Source: Dimorphilus gyrociliatus (Eukaryota > Animalia > Annelida). Taken from it: a DNA stretch of 64,000 nucleotides. The position numbers and the translations under genes are program-made. The notes beneath the pieces are model-generated. The model was given only the letters and a program-made list of their open reading frames with translations. It searched no databases and had not been told where the DNA came from. Each line of letters begins with the position of its first letter. The first letter of the stretch is position 1. Of this stretch, positions 40,161 to 54,961 are shown one piece after another. The stretch lies in contig CAJFCJ010000003.1 of NCBI GenBank assembly GCA_904063045.1, positions 2,029,106 through 2,093,105 of the forward strand, read 5' to 3'.

Positions 40161-43100
40161 TCAAAAAGCGGTCTGTAAACTGGAAAGAGCGTCTTGTAAT
40201 TTACGCAATTTAGTCTCAGTTGCTGCTTTGGCTTCTTCAGTGTCCTTTAGCAATTCCCTCATTTCATCTTCGACTTCTTTTACTCTAGCTGATCGGTCAG
40301 CTATTTCTCTATCCTTTTCTAAAATTCTTTGCCTCATTTCTGATTCTAACAGCTCTTTCTGTGCGACTAACTGTTTTCGAAAAGATTCATCAGCCGCTTG
40401 TAAATTTTTTCGGCTTTCTTCGGCAGATTGGACGGCAGTATTCTTCTCTTCGTTTAATTTTTTATGCTTTTCATCCCATACAGACTTTAATTTACGAACT
40501 TTCTCTTCTAATTTGACGATCAAGTCGCATTTTTCACTCCATTGGGACTTGATCGCATTATGAGATCTACGCCAATTTTCAACTTCCTCTTCTAATTCAG
40601 AGACTCTCTTTTTTAGGTCATCTTTTCGATTTCTCATTCTCTCTAATCTATCATCATAATCTTTCTGAACACAAGCGTCATTTTCTAAATGATCATGTAA
40701 ATCTCTTTCGGAACGAAGGGCATCACTCCTTGCTTCCTTAACTTCAGCATCCCTCTCTAATAAAGCTTCTTTAAGTTTAGCTATTGTTGACGTTTGATCT
40801 TGAATTATAGCCGTTTTTATTCTTACTGTATCAACTTCAGACTCTAGTTGTTTTGCTAAAGTTGCATTTTCATTTCTCAAAGATTCGATTTTAGCCTCTA
40901 GCCTTCCCCTTTCTTGAGCTAAACTTGACCCCTGCTCGGCAAGTTCTTCACTCCAAACTTTTCTCTCAGCTTTCAGACCTTCGTTAATCGATTTAACAGC
41001 TGTCAACTGAGCCAATAAGTCATTTCTCTCCTTTTTTACTAATTCTAACTGTATCATTCTTCGCTTAGCCTCATCTACATGTTTTTCCAGTTCAGTTATA
41101 CGGTCTTTCATATCCGATGCTTGCTCATGCTTGCATTTATTTAGTTCCGTTAATCTCCCTTTTTGTTCTTTCACCAATTGGGTTAGTTCGTTAATCATTT
41201 TCGAAGACTTAACATTTTGTTCTGTGGATTCTTTTAGGGCTTCTCTCGTTTCTGATAATTCATTTTTATTAGTCTCTAATTCTTTTACGATTTTTTCTCT
41301 TGTCTCTGCCTCTATTACAAGAGCAATTCTAAGTTCATCTTCGAGCCTACTATATTCGTTTGCCAACATATCGATTTTCATCTTTTGGGTGCCATCTATT
41401 TTTTCATTGGAAAGTCTTAAGTTTAATTCTTTTTCGTATTCTTCCTTTTTAGCTTTTAACTGCGCTTTCAAATCAATATTCTCTCCCTTTAGGATTTCAA
41501 CCTGTCACGGTTAAAAAGATACGTTAATGTATAGGATATCTACCAAAGACATTTAATCTATTTAAAGTATTTAACTGCTCTCTATTGTACAACTGCTCTT
41601 AAACGAACGAATAAACGAACTTGTTGTGAAATAGTAAAATTTTCTTTCTGATTTATCTTCAATTCTTTATTCAATTCGTCGAATCGTTCGGCGTAGTTCT
41701 TTTCTAGTTCCCCATTACTTTTCTCTAAATTGATGCATTTACTATGTAATTGATTGATATATTCGGAAGACTCTTTTAGCTCCAAGCGCATTGTTTCTAA
41801 AGAATTCTCGCATTCTATTCTCTTGTCTCGTTCCTCTGAAAGGGTCTGCTGTAATTGACGAACCATCGAAGCTAATCTATGGGATGCAGCTTCAGCTTGG
41901 TGAAGACGATCGTAATCAAATTTTATACGTTTCTCGTCCATCTTTTCCCTTTCAATTCTAAATGAATAAATAACTGAAGTATCTATACAACAAAAAAAAG
42001 AATGTTATTACCTTTTAGTAATATTTTCAGCCGGTTTTTTGGTTCCTTGAAGAAAGCATATAATATATTTTAGCAACTGTCCTACTTTTTTTTTAAATTA
42101 ACTGACCGTTGACAAAAGCTGATCGAACTTCATTTTTATTTCTATTTGTTTCAGTTTGAGTGCATGAACTAGTAGTTGTAACTCTTTCCTAAAGTATAAA
42201 AAATGGATACTATGCAATTACAATTAATGCTACTTTTTGCTACTTTTAAATTATCTTTATCTAAAATTCTTAGCTATTCATTACCTCTTTCAATTTTGAC
42301 TTTTCGAGTAGATCGGCCAATTGTTTTTCAATATTTTCTAATCTCTCTTTACTTTCGACTTTCTATTTTTGTAGAAATGAATATAAAAAATTTAATTATC
42401 AAATATTTTCTACTGTTTTGTTTATACCAATGAAGTTTTATTTCTAGTTTCATCTTTCGATGGTTCCTCGCTTAGAATAGTTGATTCATTGCTGCTTACA
42501 GTGGATATTTCTGGCGTTTTTACTCTTCTGCTACGGAATTTTTCTAGTGCAGCATCAATCTTCGGCGTCATTATTCTAGAATCTAAGATTGATGTATCGG
42601 ATGAATTTGAATGAAGAAATTCTGAAAATTCGTTTAAGTGAGGGGAGAACGAAAACGTTTTTTCAGCTATTTCTCCATTTTTAGTCTTTCCATCTAAAGA
42701 ATGTAGATACGGTAGAGTATTCCATATTGACTTTTGATAATCTGAAGAAAAAACTTAATTCTACCCATTGTCATTTAAATTGAGTTAACCATTACCAGAT
42801 TCACAGCAAATTGCATTTGTAGCAGATCCTTGATTAAATAATAACTCTTTTAAGTAACGACATGCCTCTAAACAGGCTAAGACGTGCTCAAAATCTGTCA
42901 ATGTATTCCCAGAGGCATTTAAGATACTAAATTTGGTGGATGGAATACTTCTCAAACCAGATAAATCACTTATCTTATTATGCGAAACATCTAACTTTAC
43001 AAGATTCCTATAGGCCGTTGATAATAATATTTTAATATTTCATGTAAAAAGGAAACTTACTTTGTATTATGTAAACCTGTAACCGTCTCGATCTTGTTAC

Positions 43101-43329
43101 ATGATAAATTCAGGTTTCTAAGGTTAACGAGACTCTCTAAGCCTTCGATATATTTTATTTTATTTGATGAGAGATCCAAAAATTGTAAACTAACAGCTGC
43201 TTTTAAGTTTATAATACGATCAATCTTATTAGAATGGAGGTTAAGAGAAACTAAATGTCCTGTTATTGATAAAGAATGAAGATTTGTTATATTTCTATCA
43301 ATGAGATTAATTTCGCGTAATTCATCCAT
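40161..43329 (-). CDS. LRRCC1: Leucine-rich repeat and coiled-coil domain-containing protein 1
   Basis: N-terminal SDS22-like LRRs (LNLHSNKI, LDLSSNKI, LNLSCNKI) then long coiled coil with ERKVWSEELAEQGSSLAQERGRLEAKI. Confidence 0.85.
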
Positions 43330-43690: not shown

Positions 43691-46901
<3,211 letters not shown>

Positions 46902-47187: not shown

Positions 47188-47603
47188 CTCACTGTAACAA
47201 GAACTTATTATTGTTTTATCAAACACGGCACCATAAAACCTTGAAATAAATACAAAAATATATCTATACGTATATAAAATTTTGTCTACATAGCCAATAT
47301 CCAATTTTCCAAAATTTATCATTCCAATATTAGATATAGTGAGGAAACTTTATGTATTAATCGTGTCTGCTGTCAAACATAACCTTTCAATTGAGTTCCT
47401 TGATAAAAATGGCGAATAGAAAAGTAAACATGTTCAAAATTGTGTAAACCTATAGAAAACTTGTTGCTCTGATTGCTTAATTTGTTGAGGATATTTGTAA
47501 TTTCCCGTATTAGATAGGTTAAATAATTATCATTAAATATAAATATATATAGAGCAAATTTCAAGCTATTGCACTTGTCAATTGCAAAGTATTAGAGGGA
47601 AAA

Positions 47604-49438
47604 ATGAAGTGTTTACTTGCGTATGTTGCTTTGTCGGCTATTGTTTTTTGCGAAGCTAATTTGCCAGGCTTACCGTTTCTTCAAAGTGCCTTATTTAAAA
47701 AGAGATCGTCCGGTAAACGTTTCACGGTTGAAGAGGCAGCTGATGCCGATGCTCAACTTCAACGTCGAATTCAAACAGAATGTTACCCTAAAGTTATGGT
47801 AAGTGTTCTCTTTTGATAAATAATAATTCTCATTGAATGTCATCTTAGGCTTGTTGTGCTGGAAATCCAAACAGCTGCGCTCAATGCGAAAATGATATGA
47901 CCAAATGTGTTCATAGAATCACAAGTGAAATCTATGCCTCTTACAATTACGTTTATCCCGATAGTGATAAGAAGAGATCTGCACATCAGCTCGTAGCTAG
48001 AGCAGTAGAGAAGACTAAGAGGCAAATATCTAAGGCCGATATTTTAACTGCTCAGAAAAATTCCCAACAAAGGGCAATGACAGAATGCAATCAACCAGCT
48101 CAGGTAATGTATTATTTTGAACTTTTAAAGACAAATTCATAAGTAAACTATAAAAATAATAGGAGTTTTTTATGAACTGCCTATCAAGCGGAAAATCGCA
48201 AAACCAATGTAGCAGTGAAGTCGAAGCTGTAGTTGCTGAATGTTCAAAAAAAATTGCCATAGAAGAATTCTCTAAATTTGGGATGACTATACCTTCAAAA
48301 CGAGGCATAAAGAGACAAATTTCGAACGCCGATCTTGAAAAGATGCAAAGAGTTGTTACTCAAAGAGTTAGGGATGAGTGTAGTGGACCAGCTCAGGTAA
48401 AAAACAGTCGTTTTTATTCCTTGTCCTTGAAAAAATTCAATCATTTACTACACAGGAGTCATTTATGAAATGTTTAGGAAGTGGTAAATCTCAAGGTCAA
48501 TGTTCATCTGAACTTGAACCTATGGTTGTAGCCTGTTCAAACAAAATAGCTATGAAAGAATATGCAAAGTTGGGTATTACTATTCCTGGAAAGAGAGATC
48601 TTAAGAGACAAACTTCCCAGGCTGATCTTCAGCGTGTTCAACAAATAACCACTCAAAGAGCAATGATTGAATGCCGTCAACCAGCTCAGGTAAAAATTTA
48701 ATTATTATATTCAAGACAATAAAAACTAAATGTAAATATAGAATTTCTTCTTGAGCTGCATGGGAAAGGGTCAAAGCCCTGAGCAATGTTCTTCAGAAGT
48801 TGAAGCCATGGTTATGGAATGTTCTACAAGAATTGCTCAAGAGGAATATGTTAAAATTGGCATTTCTTTGCCATCAAAGAGAAACGGACATAAGAGAGCG
48901 GTTAGTGAAGGAGATATTCAAAATGCCCAAAGTATTGCATCTAACCGAGCCATGACCGAATGCAGGAAGCCTACACAGGTATCTATATCGAGAGCACTCT
49001 TTAAATTAAATAAGAAAAAACTGCTATTACGATAGGATTTCTTCATGGACTGCTTGCGCAAAGGTAATCCCCAAGAACAATGTTCAAGAGAAGCAGAATC
49101 CGTAGTTGTGGAATGTTCAAATAAGATTGTCCAAGAAGAATTTGCCAAAATAGGCTTTAATTTACAATCGCTATCAAAGAGAGAAGAAATAACTTACGAA
49201 CAGCAGATGGCAATCGCGCAAGAAATTCAAGAAAAATGCTCTCCGCAATCAGATGTATTTAAGAAATGTTCATAATCATGATGATCCCTAATTTATTTTT
49301 TTATACTTTCAGGCCTGCTTTAAATCTTGCCAGGATTTTCAATGTTTTGATAAATGTCAATTAGAACTTTCTGCTTGCACCGCTGTAATCTATCAAAACT
49401 ATGGAATCGAGATAATTGACAAGAAACGATCGCTTTAA
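47604..49438 (+). CDS. Secreted tandem-repeat polyprotein precursor (499 aa) with dibasic cleavage sites and six Cys-patterned units
   Basis: Exons 47604-47798, 47849-48103, 48163-48396, 48456-48689, 48742-48978, 49036-49254, 49313-49438, all phase 0; signal peptide MKCLLAYVALSAIVFCEA; repeated KR/KKR sites; four internal units with C-X10-C-X9-C-X10-C. Confidence 0.88.
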
Positions 49439-50605
49439 GGGAATCTTGTTAGATATTTAATTGATAAATTATATTTTCCTATAAGTATGTTAGTATAGAG
49501 CAAATAAAAAAGTTCAAAGGAAACACATGGATATATAATTTGAATATTAATTTTTTGTTATTTGGCTGGTTATTTAGAAATATACATTATTATATATTGA
49601 AAGTATTCAATATATATACAGTATATATATATATTGATAGCAAACAATGATAAAAAACATGGAAAAAATTTAATAGAACAAGAATTCCTTTAATTATATT
49701 TAATAGTTGTAATTTCGATAGTTACTATCCCGACAAACACATTTACACACTCTATTTGTAAAAATATAAATATAAAAGCAGAAATATATAACAGAAAAGA
49801 GATGTTGTATATGTAATAAAAAGTTGAAAGGGTAGTCTAACTACCTAGAAGATTCCAACGAAAGGAAATCTTTCTAACCTACTGGAAAATGAAAGATGAG
49901 AGAAAGGTATCTTAGATGAAGTCAGTTGAAGCATGAGGAAGTTGATTTATGCGATTGCATGCGAAAATATTTTCAGTTAAATAGACTTTTAGTACCGTCT
50001 ATAAAATTCAGAGAGTAACTGTATCAAGTTAACTTAAGCCATCTCAAGTAGGTTTTTTTCATTTGAAACATTTTTATATGCCAGATAACTTATAATCGGG
50101 AGAGTAGGGAAAGAAAAAACAAGAGAGAGAGAGAATTGAGTAAATCTTTAAGTTTTTCCTACATTACAATAAAAAACGAGAATTTTGAATATTTGAACTA
50201 GGTTAGCAGTTTTTATTTCATATATAAAAAATATTTCTTTTATTCTTCCAATTACTAATTGACCAAACATTTTAAATTCGATATCTGTGCTAATTGTATT
50301 TCTTTCTGGTGCACTTTAGACAGTGAACGATGCAAGATGCGTAAAATGGGGAAATGAAAATAAAATTCACGCTTTCCAATAATTTACCAAACTGCATGAT
50401 GTCAATATCATAGTGTTATAGTACAGTGCAACTAGCAGGTTTCATTTTAAAATTATAAGTCATCAGGAGGTGATGTATTTTGTTTTTGTAAAAGAAAAAA
50501 AGTTTGAACGTAATAAACTCATGGAGAGTTAAAAAAACATGTTTAACAGATCAGTTAATCTCACAGTAAAGCCGTAATTGATTGATATAAAAGCCACATT
50601 TTTTT

Positions 50606-51608
50606 TTATTCTCCAGGTTTATATGGATTATAATCTGTTTTCTTCATAGATCCTAATGTATGATTGACAACTCTATGGTGAGCTTCATCTGCCCTTATTG
50701 CGAGAGTTACATCCAAAAGAGTAGCTGTTGGTTTTAACTTCCAATACGTTATAGCGACTTTAGGAGCTGGAGTAGTTTTCCAATGTTTTAAACAACCGTT
50801 TTCATTCTCTATATCGAGTAAACACTTTGTATACGTAACTACGGCTTCTTCTTCTAAATAACCCACAAAACGATGGCAATATTTCGGCGAGATGAGGTAT
50901 GCCAAAGAGAAAAATGTAACAAAAAAGCCTTGAGTCCCTACAACTCCAGCTCTAAACATCCATGATGGCTTTTTCAATTGCAGAGCGGTCATCAAGTGCA
51001 TTCTTTCATTCTCGGCCTCCTCTAACAATGTATGTATCCATCCGTGATCTCTTTCCATTCTTCTTAAACTATTCAAATGTCTAACCATTGCTATGTAAGG
51101 AAACGAACAAATTTCAAATTTAAAAAATATTAGAATTTTTCTTAACTGACAAATCTTTACCTGCAACCATTCCCGGCACTCCTGCAACTGTTTCCAAAAA
51201 TGTGATTCTATTTATCCAAACGCCTTCGTCGCGTTTTCTGTTATATCCAGACAATATATCAAAACCCTTTCTTAAAAATTGAACTGTTAGATAAGCAGAC
51301 CAATCAATAAAGCCTTTTGGTTGTCGATGGGTGATTGTGATGGATCTCACTTCGTCATCGCTCCATATTGGATGAGGCAACGAGGATGCTCCAATAGGTG
51401 GTTCATGGGCCGATTTTGTTTTACTAACAAAATTGTCTCCAGTATTAATTTCGGAAATTTGTTCTTGAACTCGTTTATCGAAATCAGCTTGCGAATATTC
51501 TTTCTTGCTACAAAGTACTTGAGAGGAATAAGAGAGTTGACGAAATGATGTTATAACAATATGCTGTTTAAGTATTCTTCCAAGCACTATTGTTGGACGA
51601 GATATCAT
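50606..51608 (-). CDS. AOX: Mitochondrial alternative oxidase
   Basis: Exons 51161-51608 and 50606-51090: FLETVAGVPGMVA|AMVRHL.SLR, LEEAENERMHL, FVGYLEEEAV.TY, IRADEAHHR.VNH, C-terminal NPYKPGE. Confidence 0.97.
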
Positions 51609-52678: not shown

Positions 52679-54961
52679 ATGGCGGAAAGAGACTTATTTG
52701 AAAATTTTGCAAAGTTACAAAATAGCTTTTACCTGGCTGTCTCTCGGGTAAAATCAATAAATTTTATTTTTATCATTTTTATATAAAGACTTTTGGAATT
52801 TCTCTTTTGATAAAGATAGTTTTAACCTTATTTTTCAGACGATTGATCCTAATTTCAAACAGAATATTGAATGCGCGTTCCGTATTGTTGGAAATTACGG
52901 GATGATATCGTTGTTTGCTGATTGGTTTGGTAGTCAACTGTCACTCTACTTTAAAGATACACTTATCCCTAATTTAGACAATGAATTTAATTCAAAAGCG
53001 ACTGATCAAACAAGTAGAGTGTATAGAGGCCTAGACGTATTACACTCCGGTTTAAAATCTTTATTTGACTATTGCAATTTATGTGACACTTTTATCGATA
53101 GTAACAATTTCACAATTATTTTACAATCAAAAATTGAAAGCTGCATTCTGCCTAATTTATCCCAGCCTTTCCTTGATCACATAATGAAATTATATCAAGA
53201 TATTTCCGATGAATTATATTCGCTGGACGAAAATTTTTCTTTCGAAGTATTCAATCAAACAAAAGCAAACCAATTTCGCCAAATGAATGCTCAAATGTAA
53301 GTGTGTTTATTTTTCTGAATAGGTGTTGGTACTAAACAATCATTGTGTTCTGTAGGAAAGAAATTAATTTATGGAAAAATATGTGTTATTGTTATGCCAC
53401 AGAAGCTTTTCACGAAACGGTTGTGAAAACGGTGAAAAGCCTGTCATCTAATGAAAAGCTTATACATTCTCCACTTGTCCCTCGCCTTTCTCAATGGTTA
53501 TGTGCGTTTAGAAATAAATATTCTCGGCTTATCGGCGAGGAGGCGTCAACTAGTGTTGAAAACGTTCCGTTGTATGTTTTGTTTGAGGCTGTCGCCAAGG
53601 AGCGAATACGAAACATCTTCAAACTTATGGTTCATTACCCAGATAGTTCCAGATCGTTGATAGAGTTGAAAGACTGCATCGATCGTGTTCCGAAATTAAA
53701 GCCGGTTTTAGCGACGGAGATAAAGACCGCAATCAGTCGAAGACTTCTTCATGCGGGCGTTGCAACAACGGAAATTTTAACGGCATACGTAGCTGTCGTT
53801 AAAACTTGTCGCTTATTACTAGATTTGGATAGTGTTGTAGCATCTATAACTCGACCCATAACAGATTATTTACGCAAAAGAAACGACACAATTCGTTGTT
53901 TGGTTATTAGCGTTGTTGATGAAGACAATGACATTGATTTGTCTTCTTTTGATTCTCTAAACTATTCGATGGATTTCTGGAAAACGTGGCAGCCCCCAAG
54001 CACACATATTGATAGTATAGATTTAGAAGAATCACACAAAGACACTTTCAATGCTCTAGTTGACGATTTGGGTGGTGCTGATTTATTAGTCAAAGAGTAC
54101 GCAAAACAATTAGCTGAAAGAATGCTTGCTTCGCCTGGTGATTTGCGGGTTGATGACGAAATCAAAAGGATCGAAACCCTCAAATTAAAGTTTGGTGAAC
54201 CAGCATTGTCAGCCTGTGATGTAATGATGGTGGACTTGAAAGAATCTAGTCGTATAAGGAGCTGTTTGAAGAAAGAACAGACCAATGCTCTTATTCTGTC
54301 AGAACACTATTGGCCAAAATTACAGGAAGAGGAAGTTGTTCTCCCTCCCGAGATAGAAAATCGTTTTGAAGAATTTACCAATGACTATCAAAAAGTTAAG
54401 GAGGGACGAACACTAAAATGGCACAAGCAATTGGGTACTATAAATATGCGTTTGGAATTAGGAGATAAGAGCTTAAATGTTGCAGTTAGTCCAGCTCACT
54501 CTGCTCTTCTGCATTTATTTACTGTAAAGGATGAACCATGGTCACTTGGCGATCTCGCTAGGGAATCTGGTATGACTAGCGCGGCAGTGAAAAGAAGGAT
54601 GAATTTGTGGTTGAAAGAAGGTGTCATTTCCCCACTGCCAGATGATAGGTTCGAGCTCAATACTACCTCAACAAGGGCTGCTGTCAATGAATCCATGGAA
54701 GAAAATCCGGAAGAAGAAGACGAGAAGGAGGAAGCGGCAAAAGCGCCTAGTCCAAAAAAAGGAAATGTAAATACTGTCTGGATGTATATTCAAGGTGTTT
54801 TACGAACTATGGAATCTGTTCCGAAAGACAAATTGCTAAAAATTCTCGCAATGTTTTCTGCTCATTTTTCTCAATTGGACATACAAAATCTTCTTGCGAA
54901 CAAGGTGAAAAACGGGCAATTAATCTTCAGTGACGGAGTTTACCGCCTTCCGACCTTATAG
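52679..54961 (+). CDS. ANAPC2: Anaphase-promoting complex subunit 2
   Basis: RRLLHAGVATTEIL..Y, YLRKRNDTIRCLV, KEYAKQLAERML, LKLKFGE..CDVMMVDLKES.RI, ILSEHYWP, KEGRTLKWHKQLG, C-terminal WHB domain. Confidence 0.93.

Follow-up and report, generated by a model that had tools for sequence, protein, structure and literature searches.

A putative secretory precursor with six tandem disulfide-stapled helical units in the annelid Dimorphilus gyrociliatus

DgyrCDS2370 is a seven-exon gene of the annelid Dimorphilus gyrociliatus, situated at positions 47604–49438 on the forward strand of a 64,000-nucleotide (nt) stretch of genomic DNA, referred to here as the window. It encodes a protein of 499 amino acids (aa) with an N-terminal leader and six cysteine-rich units that are bounded by Lys-Arg (KR) or Lys-Lys-Arg (KKR) residues. 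The best-supported reading, proposed here as probable on balance, is that of a convertase-processed secretory precursor of disulfide-stapled helix-turn-helix mini-proteins. An earlier note, made from the DNA letters alone, had interpreted the locus as a secreted polyprotein that releases six disulfide-stapled helical-hairpin peptides with signals for terminal modification. This interpretation is partly supported: the gene model, the leader, the six helical units and the KR residues in the linkers stand, but conserved maturation signals and a bare hairpin do not.

The six units lie, all on the forward strand, at 47721–47968 (unit 1), 48023–48297 (unit 2), 48316–48590 (unit 3), 48609–48876 (unit 4), 48898–49176 (unit 5) and 49183–49420 (unit 6). 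There are 28 Cys residues after the leader, and the counts per unit (6, 4, 4, 4, 4 and 6) are always even. The gaps between successive Cys residues are 10-9-10 in each of the four-Cys units 2–5, 6-0-6-2-6 in unit 1 and 6-3-4-3-6 in unit 6. These gaps agree exactly with the patterns described earlier, including the exact C-X10-C-X9-C-X10-C spacing of units 2–5. The units have isoelectric points (pI) of 4.1–7.8, net charges of −8 to +1 and grand average of hydropathy (GRAVY) values of −0.30 to −0.54.

The KR or KKR residues are found at aa positions 32–34, 38–39, 106–108, 122–123, 196–197, 200–201, 274–275, 278–279, 352–353, 357–358, 433–434 and 495–497, and they delimit pieces of 13, 3, 66, 13, 72, 2, 72, 2, 72, 3, 74, 60 and 2 residues. 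The KR count of 12 compares with an expected 2.25 ± 1.40, and none of 20000 shuffled sequences reaches 12. None of the KR pairs is inside a modelled helix, although helices make up 70% of the mature chain; all are at unit borders, in linkers that the structural model described below shows as disordered and accessible. The KR pattern is thus more than chance. The sites are plain dibasic pairs without Arg at P4, i.e. they do not conform to the furin consensus. Further dibasic pairs within the units are one RR, one KK and two RK.

The spacers SSG, a 13-residue sequence (SAHQ..EKT), GI, DL and NGH are all present as previously listed, each bounded by KR or KKR. Units 5 and 6 have no spacer and are separated by a single KR, and the C-terminal end of the protein is KKR-SL; the earlier note had omitted both of these features, as well as a 13-residue peptide that follows the leader. 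The Gln residue at the start of units 2–4 and the Pro-Gly-KR end of unit 3 were found where they had been reported. They had been taken as pyroglutamate and amidation signals of prohormone processing, and such signals are indeed present, but Gln is found in three of the six units and Gly-KR in one of the six, and neither is conserved across the array.

The N-terminal leader (47604–47657, forward strand, delimited by a hydropathy heuristic) is predicted to be a signal peptide, as had been suggested. Its hydrophobic core encompasses residues 4–15, the maximum of a 10-residue Kyte-Doolittle window is 2.38 (from residue 5), and a heuristic reading of the cleavage site finds Cys and Ala at positions −3 and −1 before Asn19. 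In an AlphaFold2 model of the whole 499-residue chain, made from the single sequence, the leader forms a helix at residues 4–17 with a low predicted local distance difference test score (pLDDT). Between the predicted leader cut and the first KKR is the hydrophobic, uncharged peptide of 13 residues (47658–47696, forward strand), followed after the KKR by SSG-KR. This peptide would be a seventh, Cys-free product or a propeptide.

The AlphaFold2 model has a mean pLDDT of 65.4, with values of 70–93 in the cores of the units and values below 50 in all linkers. In each of units 2–5 three helices are predicted: a leading one (about 18 residues) reaching to the first Cys (C1), a second one (about 13 residues) extending three residues beyond the second Cys (C2) and, after a turn of four residues, a third one (about 25 residues) with the third and fourth Cys (C3 and C4). 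In unit 2 the helices are at residues 127–144, 146–158 and 163–187, and the same arrangement, with the four-residue turn between C2 and C3, recurs in units 3–5; the first two helices of unit 3 are fused in the model. C2 and C3 flank the turn, and C1 and C4 are eleven residues farther away (about three helical turns) on the same helix face. In the model this geometry is that of a hairpin stapled by C2–C3 and C1–C4 bridges, a connectivity inferred from the Cys positions. Helix-loop-helix cores stapled in this manner are established in twin-CX9C proteins (PMC3848088) and in plant alpha-hairpinins (PMC7191063). The units are therefore predicted to be helical and to include a stapled hairpin, as had been claimed, but they are not bare hairpins: the 72-residue units have three helical segments.

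The gene structure was read from the DNA and translated exon by exon. Exon 1 (47604–47798, residues 1–65) encodes the leader, the 13-residue peptide, KKR-SSG-KR, and the first helix and first Cys of unit 1. Exon 2 (47849–48103, residues 66–150) encodes the rest of unit 1, KKR, the 13-residue spacer, KR and the first helix of unit 2. The three repeat exons follow: exon 3 (48163–48396, residues 151–228) with the unit 2 hairpin, KR-GI-KR and the first helix of unit 3; exon 4 (48456–48689, residues 229–306) with the unit 3 hairpin, KR-DL-KR and the first helix of unit 4; and exon 5 (48742–48978, residues 307–385) with the unit 4 hairpin, KR-NGH-KR and the first helix of unit 5. Exon 6 (49036–49254, residues 386–458) has the unit 5 hairpin, the single KR and the first helix of unit 6, and exon 7 (49313–49438, residues 459–499 and the stop codon) has five of the six Cys residues of unit 6, KKR-SL and TAA. 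The residue counts of the seven exons (65, 85, 78, 78, 79, 73 and 41) add up to 499, and all junctions are phase 0, since every exon length is divisible by three.

The six introns, like the exons on the forward strand, are at 47799–47848 (50 nt, 26% G+C, two in-frame stops), 48104–48162 (59 nt), 48397–48455 (59 nt), 48690–48741 (52 nt), 48979–49035 (57 nt, one in-frame stop) and 49255–49312 (58 nt). All six are phase 0, begin with GT and end with AG. In-frame stop codons are present in five of the six; intron 3 has none, but its length is not a multiple of three and it would shift the frame. The G+C content is 35–42% in the exons and 13–29% in the introns, and the window as a whole is AT-rich eukaryotic DNA of about 32% G+C. 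Introns of 50–59 nt are normal in D. gyrociliatus, as the median intron of the genome is 66 bp (PMC7854359). Retention of intron 6 would close the frame after seven codons (49255–49275), at a TAA at 49273–49275. It would also drop five of the six Cys residues of unit 6 and leave an odd Cys count, which argues that the annotated splice of intron 6 is the functional one. A pattern scan shows a TATA-like sequence, a putative core promoter, at 47538–47551 on the forward strand (TATAAATA at 47538 and TATATATA at 47544), about 55–65 nt upstream of the start codon. The same type of scan shows AATAAA, a putative polyadenylation signal, at 49503–49508 on the forward strand, 65 nt after the stop codon.

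DgyrCDS2370 was retrieved with a profile of the five repeat-bearing exons from a set of 1.84 billion representative proteins. This NCBI protein of 499 aa is identical to the one read from the DNA, and all seven exon translations match it at successive offsets (1–65, 66–150, 151–228, 229–306, 307–385, 386–458 and 459–499). It is annotated on scaffold CAJFCJ010000003.1 (assembly GCA_904063045.1) over 1835 bp, a span equal to that of the observed locus, and has MCM6 and an alternative oxidase gene as neighbors, one on either side. The record is uncharacterised and has neither a name nor a Pfam domain. The protein is thus already public as an unnamed prediction, and neither the protein nor its identifier was found in the literature and supplements searched. 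The annotation pipeline of this genome combined AUGUSTUS with alignments of proteins and of transcripts and gave the transcript alignments a tenfold weight (PMC7854359). The DNA reading, the translation of each exon and the identical public protein confirm the earlier gene model of seven phase-0 exons and a 499-aa precursor. The list of open reading frames likewise shows only fragments at 47604–49438, as stated, and the original observation holds in every detail.

The repeat exons 3, 4 and 5 display pairwise identities of 49%–59% at the protein level (59% for exon 3 and exon 4) and 58%–67% at the DNA level. The number of synonymous substitutions per site (dS) between them is 1.4–2.0, i.e. saturated, and the ratio of nonsynonymous to synonymous substitutions (dN/dS) is 0.21–0.33. 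Saturated synonymous sites together with a low dN/dS point to old repeats under purifying selection and hence to a functional coding gene. Apart from the Cys residues, conservation among the repeats is highest at the beginning of the third helix, in the short tail that precedes the KR pair, and in the KR pairs; the KR..KR arrangement is invariant in exons 3–5.

Within a repeat exon the hairpin of one unit comes first, then the linker, then the helix that opens the next unit. Exons end at residues 65, 150, 228, 306, 385 and 458, and the first Cys residues of the units are at positions 60, 145, 223, 301, 380 and 453. All six introns therefore interrupt the units in phase 0 at the same place, five codons downstream of the first Cys. 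This identical intron position shows that the six-Cys units at both ends are diverged copies of the same module as units 2–5, and that the array expanded through tandem duplication, exon by exon. No further copy of the repeat is present in the 64,000-nt window, Tandem Repeats Finder and a tRNA scan of the window gave empty results, and protein searches yielded no paralog of DgyrCDS2370. The gene is single-copy and lineage-restricted as far as the protein searches show.

In the proposed pathway the leader would be removed after about residue 18, and each module would fold oxidatively in the endoplasmic reticulum into a helix-turn-helix hairpin held together by nested disulfides. In units 2–5 the C2–C3 bridge would be beside the turn and the C1–C4 bridge eleven residues out, with an 18-residue helix in front; the two end units would have three nested bridges each. 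A subtilase of the Kex2 or prohormone convertase (PC) type would then cut after each KR in the disordered linkers, and a carboxypeptidase would trim the basic residues. The products would be six mini-proteins of 60–74 residues, the 13-residue N-terminal peptide and the small spacers. The N-terminal Gln of units 2–4 could cyclise, and unit 3 could be amidated. Since the KR sites have no Arg at P4, convertases of the neuroendocrine type fit better than furin; this follows from established convertase specificity. The PC2 helper 7B2 and some 50 precursors with KR processing are listed for D. gyrociliatus (PMC7854359 Supplementary Data).

The released products would act outside the cell. A function as ligands (of hormone, pheromone or cue type) would be likelier than membrane attack or an antimicrobial function, given that the units are hydrophilic and acidic to neutral. 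The acidic to neutral character of the units speaks against a classical cationic antimicrobial peptide.

Several points weigh against a convertase-processed precursor. DgyrCDS2370 is not in the published list of neuropeptide precursors of this species, though a cleavage-pattern script was used to compile it (PMC7854359). The units, at 60–74 residues, are far longer than typical neuropeptides, and conserved maturation signals are missing, Gly-KR being found in unit 3 only and an N-terminal Gln in units 2–4 only. The 90% identity cluster of DgyrCDS2370 has one member, a genome record, and no transcript-level support for the junctions was retrieved. The structure is a single-sequence model with a mean pLDDT of 65 and a predicted TM-score (pTM) of 0.25.

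Some of these points also fit a secreted chain that is not cut. Such a protein would consist of six stapled helical domains in tandem, e.g. a matrix protein of mucus, cocoon or cuticle, or a multivalent binder, and the basic linkers would be hinges. The secreted structural proteins of invertebrates include many orphan Cys-rich repeat proteins. The units are domain-sized (60–74 residues), the KR sites lack the P4 Arg of furin sites, no cleavage products are known, and the absence from the neuropeptide list (PMC7854359) agrees with an intact chain. The linkers themselves are harder to explain in this manner. The pairs of KR in each linker (KR-xx-KR), which are invariant in repeat exons 3–5, resemble processing sites and not hinges, and the 5-fold KR excess is confined to linkers. 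KKR is also found after the short N-terminal peptide and before the last two residues of the protein, where a hinge would be needless. In addition, the protein lacks N-glycosylation sequons, and its composition is neither low-complexity nor mucin-like or adhesive. An uncut chain is less probable than a processed one; if the chain does stay intact, DgyrCDS2370 is one more orphan Cys-rich secreted repeat protein and ordinary as such.

Searches for relatives bear on how unusual the protein is. Pfam searches at E-value ≤ 10, per exon and with the full protein, gave sub-threshold noise and no characterised family, and sequence and profile searches of PDB gave nothing below an E-value of 1. A search of 5.8 billion clusters with DgyrCDS2370 returned the protein itself only, and the same search with the repeat-exon alignment returned nothing. 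A metagenome contig scan gave 600 pattern matches, none of them confirmed. No feature of the locus points to a viral or prokaryotic source. Foldseek, with the whole model against PDB, returned generic and designed helical repeats (best E-value = 1.2); this type of comparison is uninformative for small, loosely linked domains. Literature searches on secreted CX10C proteins and on helical-hairpin polyproteins yielded nothing specific. Pfam, PDB, Foldseek, the 5.8 billion clusters and the 1.84 billion representatives therefore gave no characterised relative, in line with the first reading, in which no homolog had been recognised.

The sole real match in the profile search of 1.84 billion proteins is ISF_04504, a hypothetical protein of the fungus Cordyceps fumosorosea, and the match is weak (E-value = 8.5e-5). 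ISF_04504 has 339 residues, a leader, and units bounded by KR or KKR; four of the units have the C-X10-C-X9-C-X10-C spacing and a fifth has 10-13-10. The alignment with DgyrCDS2370 places in register the four Cys residues, a Phe-Phe-Leu/Met motif before C2, a Gly within the turn, and hydrophobic residues along the side of the third helix that bears the Cys residues. The profile score is 39.0 bits, against 0.7 ± 2.0 for shuffles that keep the Cys residues and 2.0 ± 3.0 for shuffles that keep both Cys residues and segment composition (z about 12), but it is the sum of five near-identical repeats of 3.5–10 bits each and thus overstates the independent evidence. The same caution is called for by another match, to a protein of 4698 residues (E-value = 1.7e-5), which was rejected as a summation artefact: it consists of 17 stretches of about 0–2 bits and does not have the 10-9-10 Cys pattern, and it illustrates how summed repeat scores inflate E-values. 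This protein is a giant repeat protein rich in Ser, Gly, Val and Thr.

ISF_04504 belongs to another kingdom than D. gyrociliatus and its units are shorter, about 62 residues. The overall identity is 18%, and hhalign gives a probability of 15% over 30 columns. The residues in common are those that any stapled hairpin interface needs. All repeats of ISF_04504 lie in one exon; its gene has only one intron, of about 58 nt, close to the N-terminal end of the coding sequence, and the two genes share no intron position. The AlphaFold model of ISF_04504 is helical, but at a pLDDT of 50 its quality does not permit a comparison of folds. In the cluster searches neither protein has a further relative, and Pfam searches with ISF_04504 gave sub-threshold noise. 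The fungal gene is on AZHB01000010.1 (4001–5078 of the retrieved locus); the gene upstream of it encodes a relative of S41 peptidase and of the CPAF PDZ domain, and its downstream neighbor is a phenol hydroxylase-like gene dependent on flavin adenine dinucleotide (FAD).

Fungal Kex2-processed repeat proteins (KEPs) are composed of a leader and tandem repeats bounded by KR or KKR (PMC6339444), and DgyrCDS2370 has the same layout of a leader and tandem KR/KKR-bounded units. For ISF_04504 and DgyrCDS2370, both homology and convergence are compatible with the sequences compared here, and we lean towards convergence. It is unlikely, though of interest, that the twin-CX10C unit is the founding module of a hitherto unrecognised family of KR-processed, stapled three-helix proteins that is present in an annelid and a hypocrealean fungus, either by deep ancestry with massive loss or by transfer, and that furnishes new protein-sized extracellular signals in the worm. 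With its identical Cys spacing, the KR-punctuated fungal parallel provides a testable case of convergence versus common origin for stapled helical hairpins.

Precursors of a comparable design are found in plants. Type-2 alpha-hairpinin precursors, e.g. Tk-AMP-X of wheat and Sm-AMP-X of chickweed, have a signal peptide, 5–12 tandem helix-loop-helix modules with two disulfides each, and a short C-terminal part, and the modules are freed by proteolysis (PMC7191063). DgyrCDS2370 is similar in its leader, in its tandem four-Cys helix-turn-helix modules, for which the C1–C4 and C2–C3 bridges are a prediction, and in its short C-terminal part. However, alpha-hairpinins are defined by a CXXXC-Xn-CXXXC motif and have about 30–40 residues, whereas the D. 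gyrociliatus modules are 72 residues long, have the spacing CX10C-X9-CX10C and are predicted to carry an additional helix in front. The alpha-hairpinin motif is not found in DgyrCDS2370; only unit 6 displays two C-X3-C steps, and these are inside its six-Cys pattern. The Pfam search shows no sequence similarity to alpha-hairpinins. Furthermore, alpha-hairpinins are plant proteins cut by plant proteases, in contrast to the KR pairs of the D. gyrociliatus protein.

This likeness raises the question of whether the same processing could yield products for host defence (antimicrobial, antifungal or deterrent), as an animal counterpart of the alpha-hairpinin cassettes. The layout agrees, and a fully hydrophilic surface is known from at least one alpha-hairpinin (PMC7191063). 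The charge and pI values of the units are nevertheless unlike those of cationic antimicrobial peptides, and the defining CXXXC motif is absent. Lineage-restricted, fast-evolving secreted Cys-rich genes are often defence genes, but DgyrCDS2370 is single copy as far as protein searches show and not part of an expanded, diversifying family, and dN/dS between its repeats is below 1. A defence role is therefore quite improbable.

That the gene is an annotation artefact or a decaying pseudogene is very improbable: no transcript evidence was retrieved, the public cluster is single-member and the tandem repeat is too diverged at the DNA level for Tandem Repeats Finder, but all seven exons are open, in phase 0 and flanked by canonical splice sites, exons and introns differ in G+C content, the 28 mature Cys residues come in even numbers per unit with conserved spacing, dN/dS is 0.21–0.33 with saturated synonymous sites, a TATA-like box and AATAAA are where they are expected, and the annotation weighted transcript alignments tenfold (PMC7854359).

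Two further groups of proteins share features with a convertase-processed precursor of stapled mini-proteins. Twin-CX9C proteins have an antiparallel helix-loop-helix core with two Cys residues per helix, about three turns apart, and CX8C and CX10C variants are known (PMC3848088). The modelled D. gyrociliatus units have a similar helix-loop-helix core with paired Cys residues about three turns apart. Twin-CX9C proteins, however, are single-domain, intracellular proteins of about 10 kDa that have no signal peptide and are oxidised by Mia40, unlike the D. gyrociliatus protein with its N-terminal leader, six tandem units and KR linkers. The Pfam search does not place the protein in a CHCH-type family; the only related family listed is NDUFS5, with an E-value of 6.4.

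The multi-copy neuropeptide precursors of D. gyrociliatus itself (FMRFamide-like, pedal peptide and WI) have a signal peptide, repeats flanked by KR or KKR, and short spacers (PMC7854359). DgyrCDS2370 resembles them in its repeats and spacers, and its leader is a putative signal peptide. The neuropeptide products, however, have 4–20 residues, are mostly without Cys and usually have a Gly for amidation, whereas the predicted products of DgyrCDS2370 are folded, have 60–74 residues and show only one Gly-KR end.

The earlier note had also drawn a comparison with small helical proteins of other invertebrates. Aplysia attractin and the nemertean neurotoxin B-IV are small secreted helical proteins stabilised by disulfides, and nematode polyprotein allergens (ABA-1 type) consist of tandem helical units that are freed at basic sites. 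This likeness is an analogy, and no match to attractin, nematode polyprotein allergens, neurotoxin B-IV or saposin was found in Pfam (E-value ≤ 10), the PDB searches or Foldseek.

The architecture of DgyrCDS2370 is thus known in kind, from alpha-hairpinin cassettes, fungal KEPs and animal multi-copy precursors. The module, as judged from its sequence, is new in its Cys framework, its length and its leading helix, and fits no described family. If the units are released, they represent a new Cys framework (CX10C-X9-CX10C in about 72 residues) for stable helical mini-proteins. DgyrCDS2370 would then be a novel kind of multi-product precursor in animals, intermediate between the precursors of short neuropeptides and protein hormones the size of a domain. 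The neuropeptides and G protein-coupled receptors of D. gyrociliatus, whose genome measures 70 Mb, have been catalogued (PMC7854359), and with such a catalogue an additional, uncatalogued family of secreted ligands would be traceable in this species.

Other genes lie around DgyrCDS2370 in the window. The last exons of MCM6 are at 46219–46901 on the forward strand; an open reading frame at 46476–46898 matches the MCM6 C-terminal winged-helix domain (E-value = 8e-28), and the annotated MCM6 ends about 700 nt before the start codon of DgyrCDS2370. The alternative oxidase gene (Pfam AOX, E-value = 8e-70) is at 50606–51608 on the reverse strand and is convergent with DgyrCDS2370. To our knowledge, AOX is absent from vertebrates and insects but is kept in many marine invertebrates.

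Farther upstream, at 40161–43329 on the reverse strand, leucine-rich repeats (43060–43329) are followed by long coiled-coil exons. A 436-codon open reading frame within these exons (40164–41471) has no Pfam match. The locus looks like a candidate gene for a centrosomal-type protein with leucine-rich repeats and coiled coils. Downstream, at 52902–54961 on the forward strand, is the gene for anaphase-promoting complex subunit 2, with ANAPC2 TPR, cullin and ANAPC2 domains. It is encoded mostly in one exon of 538 codons, which is typical of an intron-poor compact genome.

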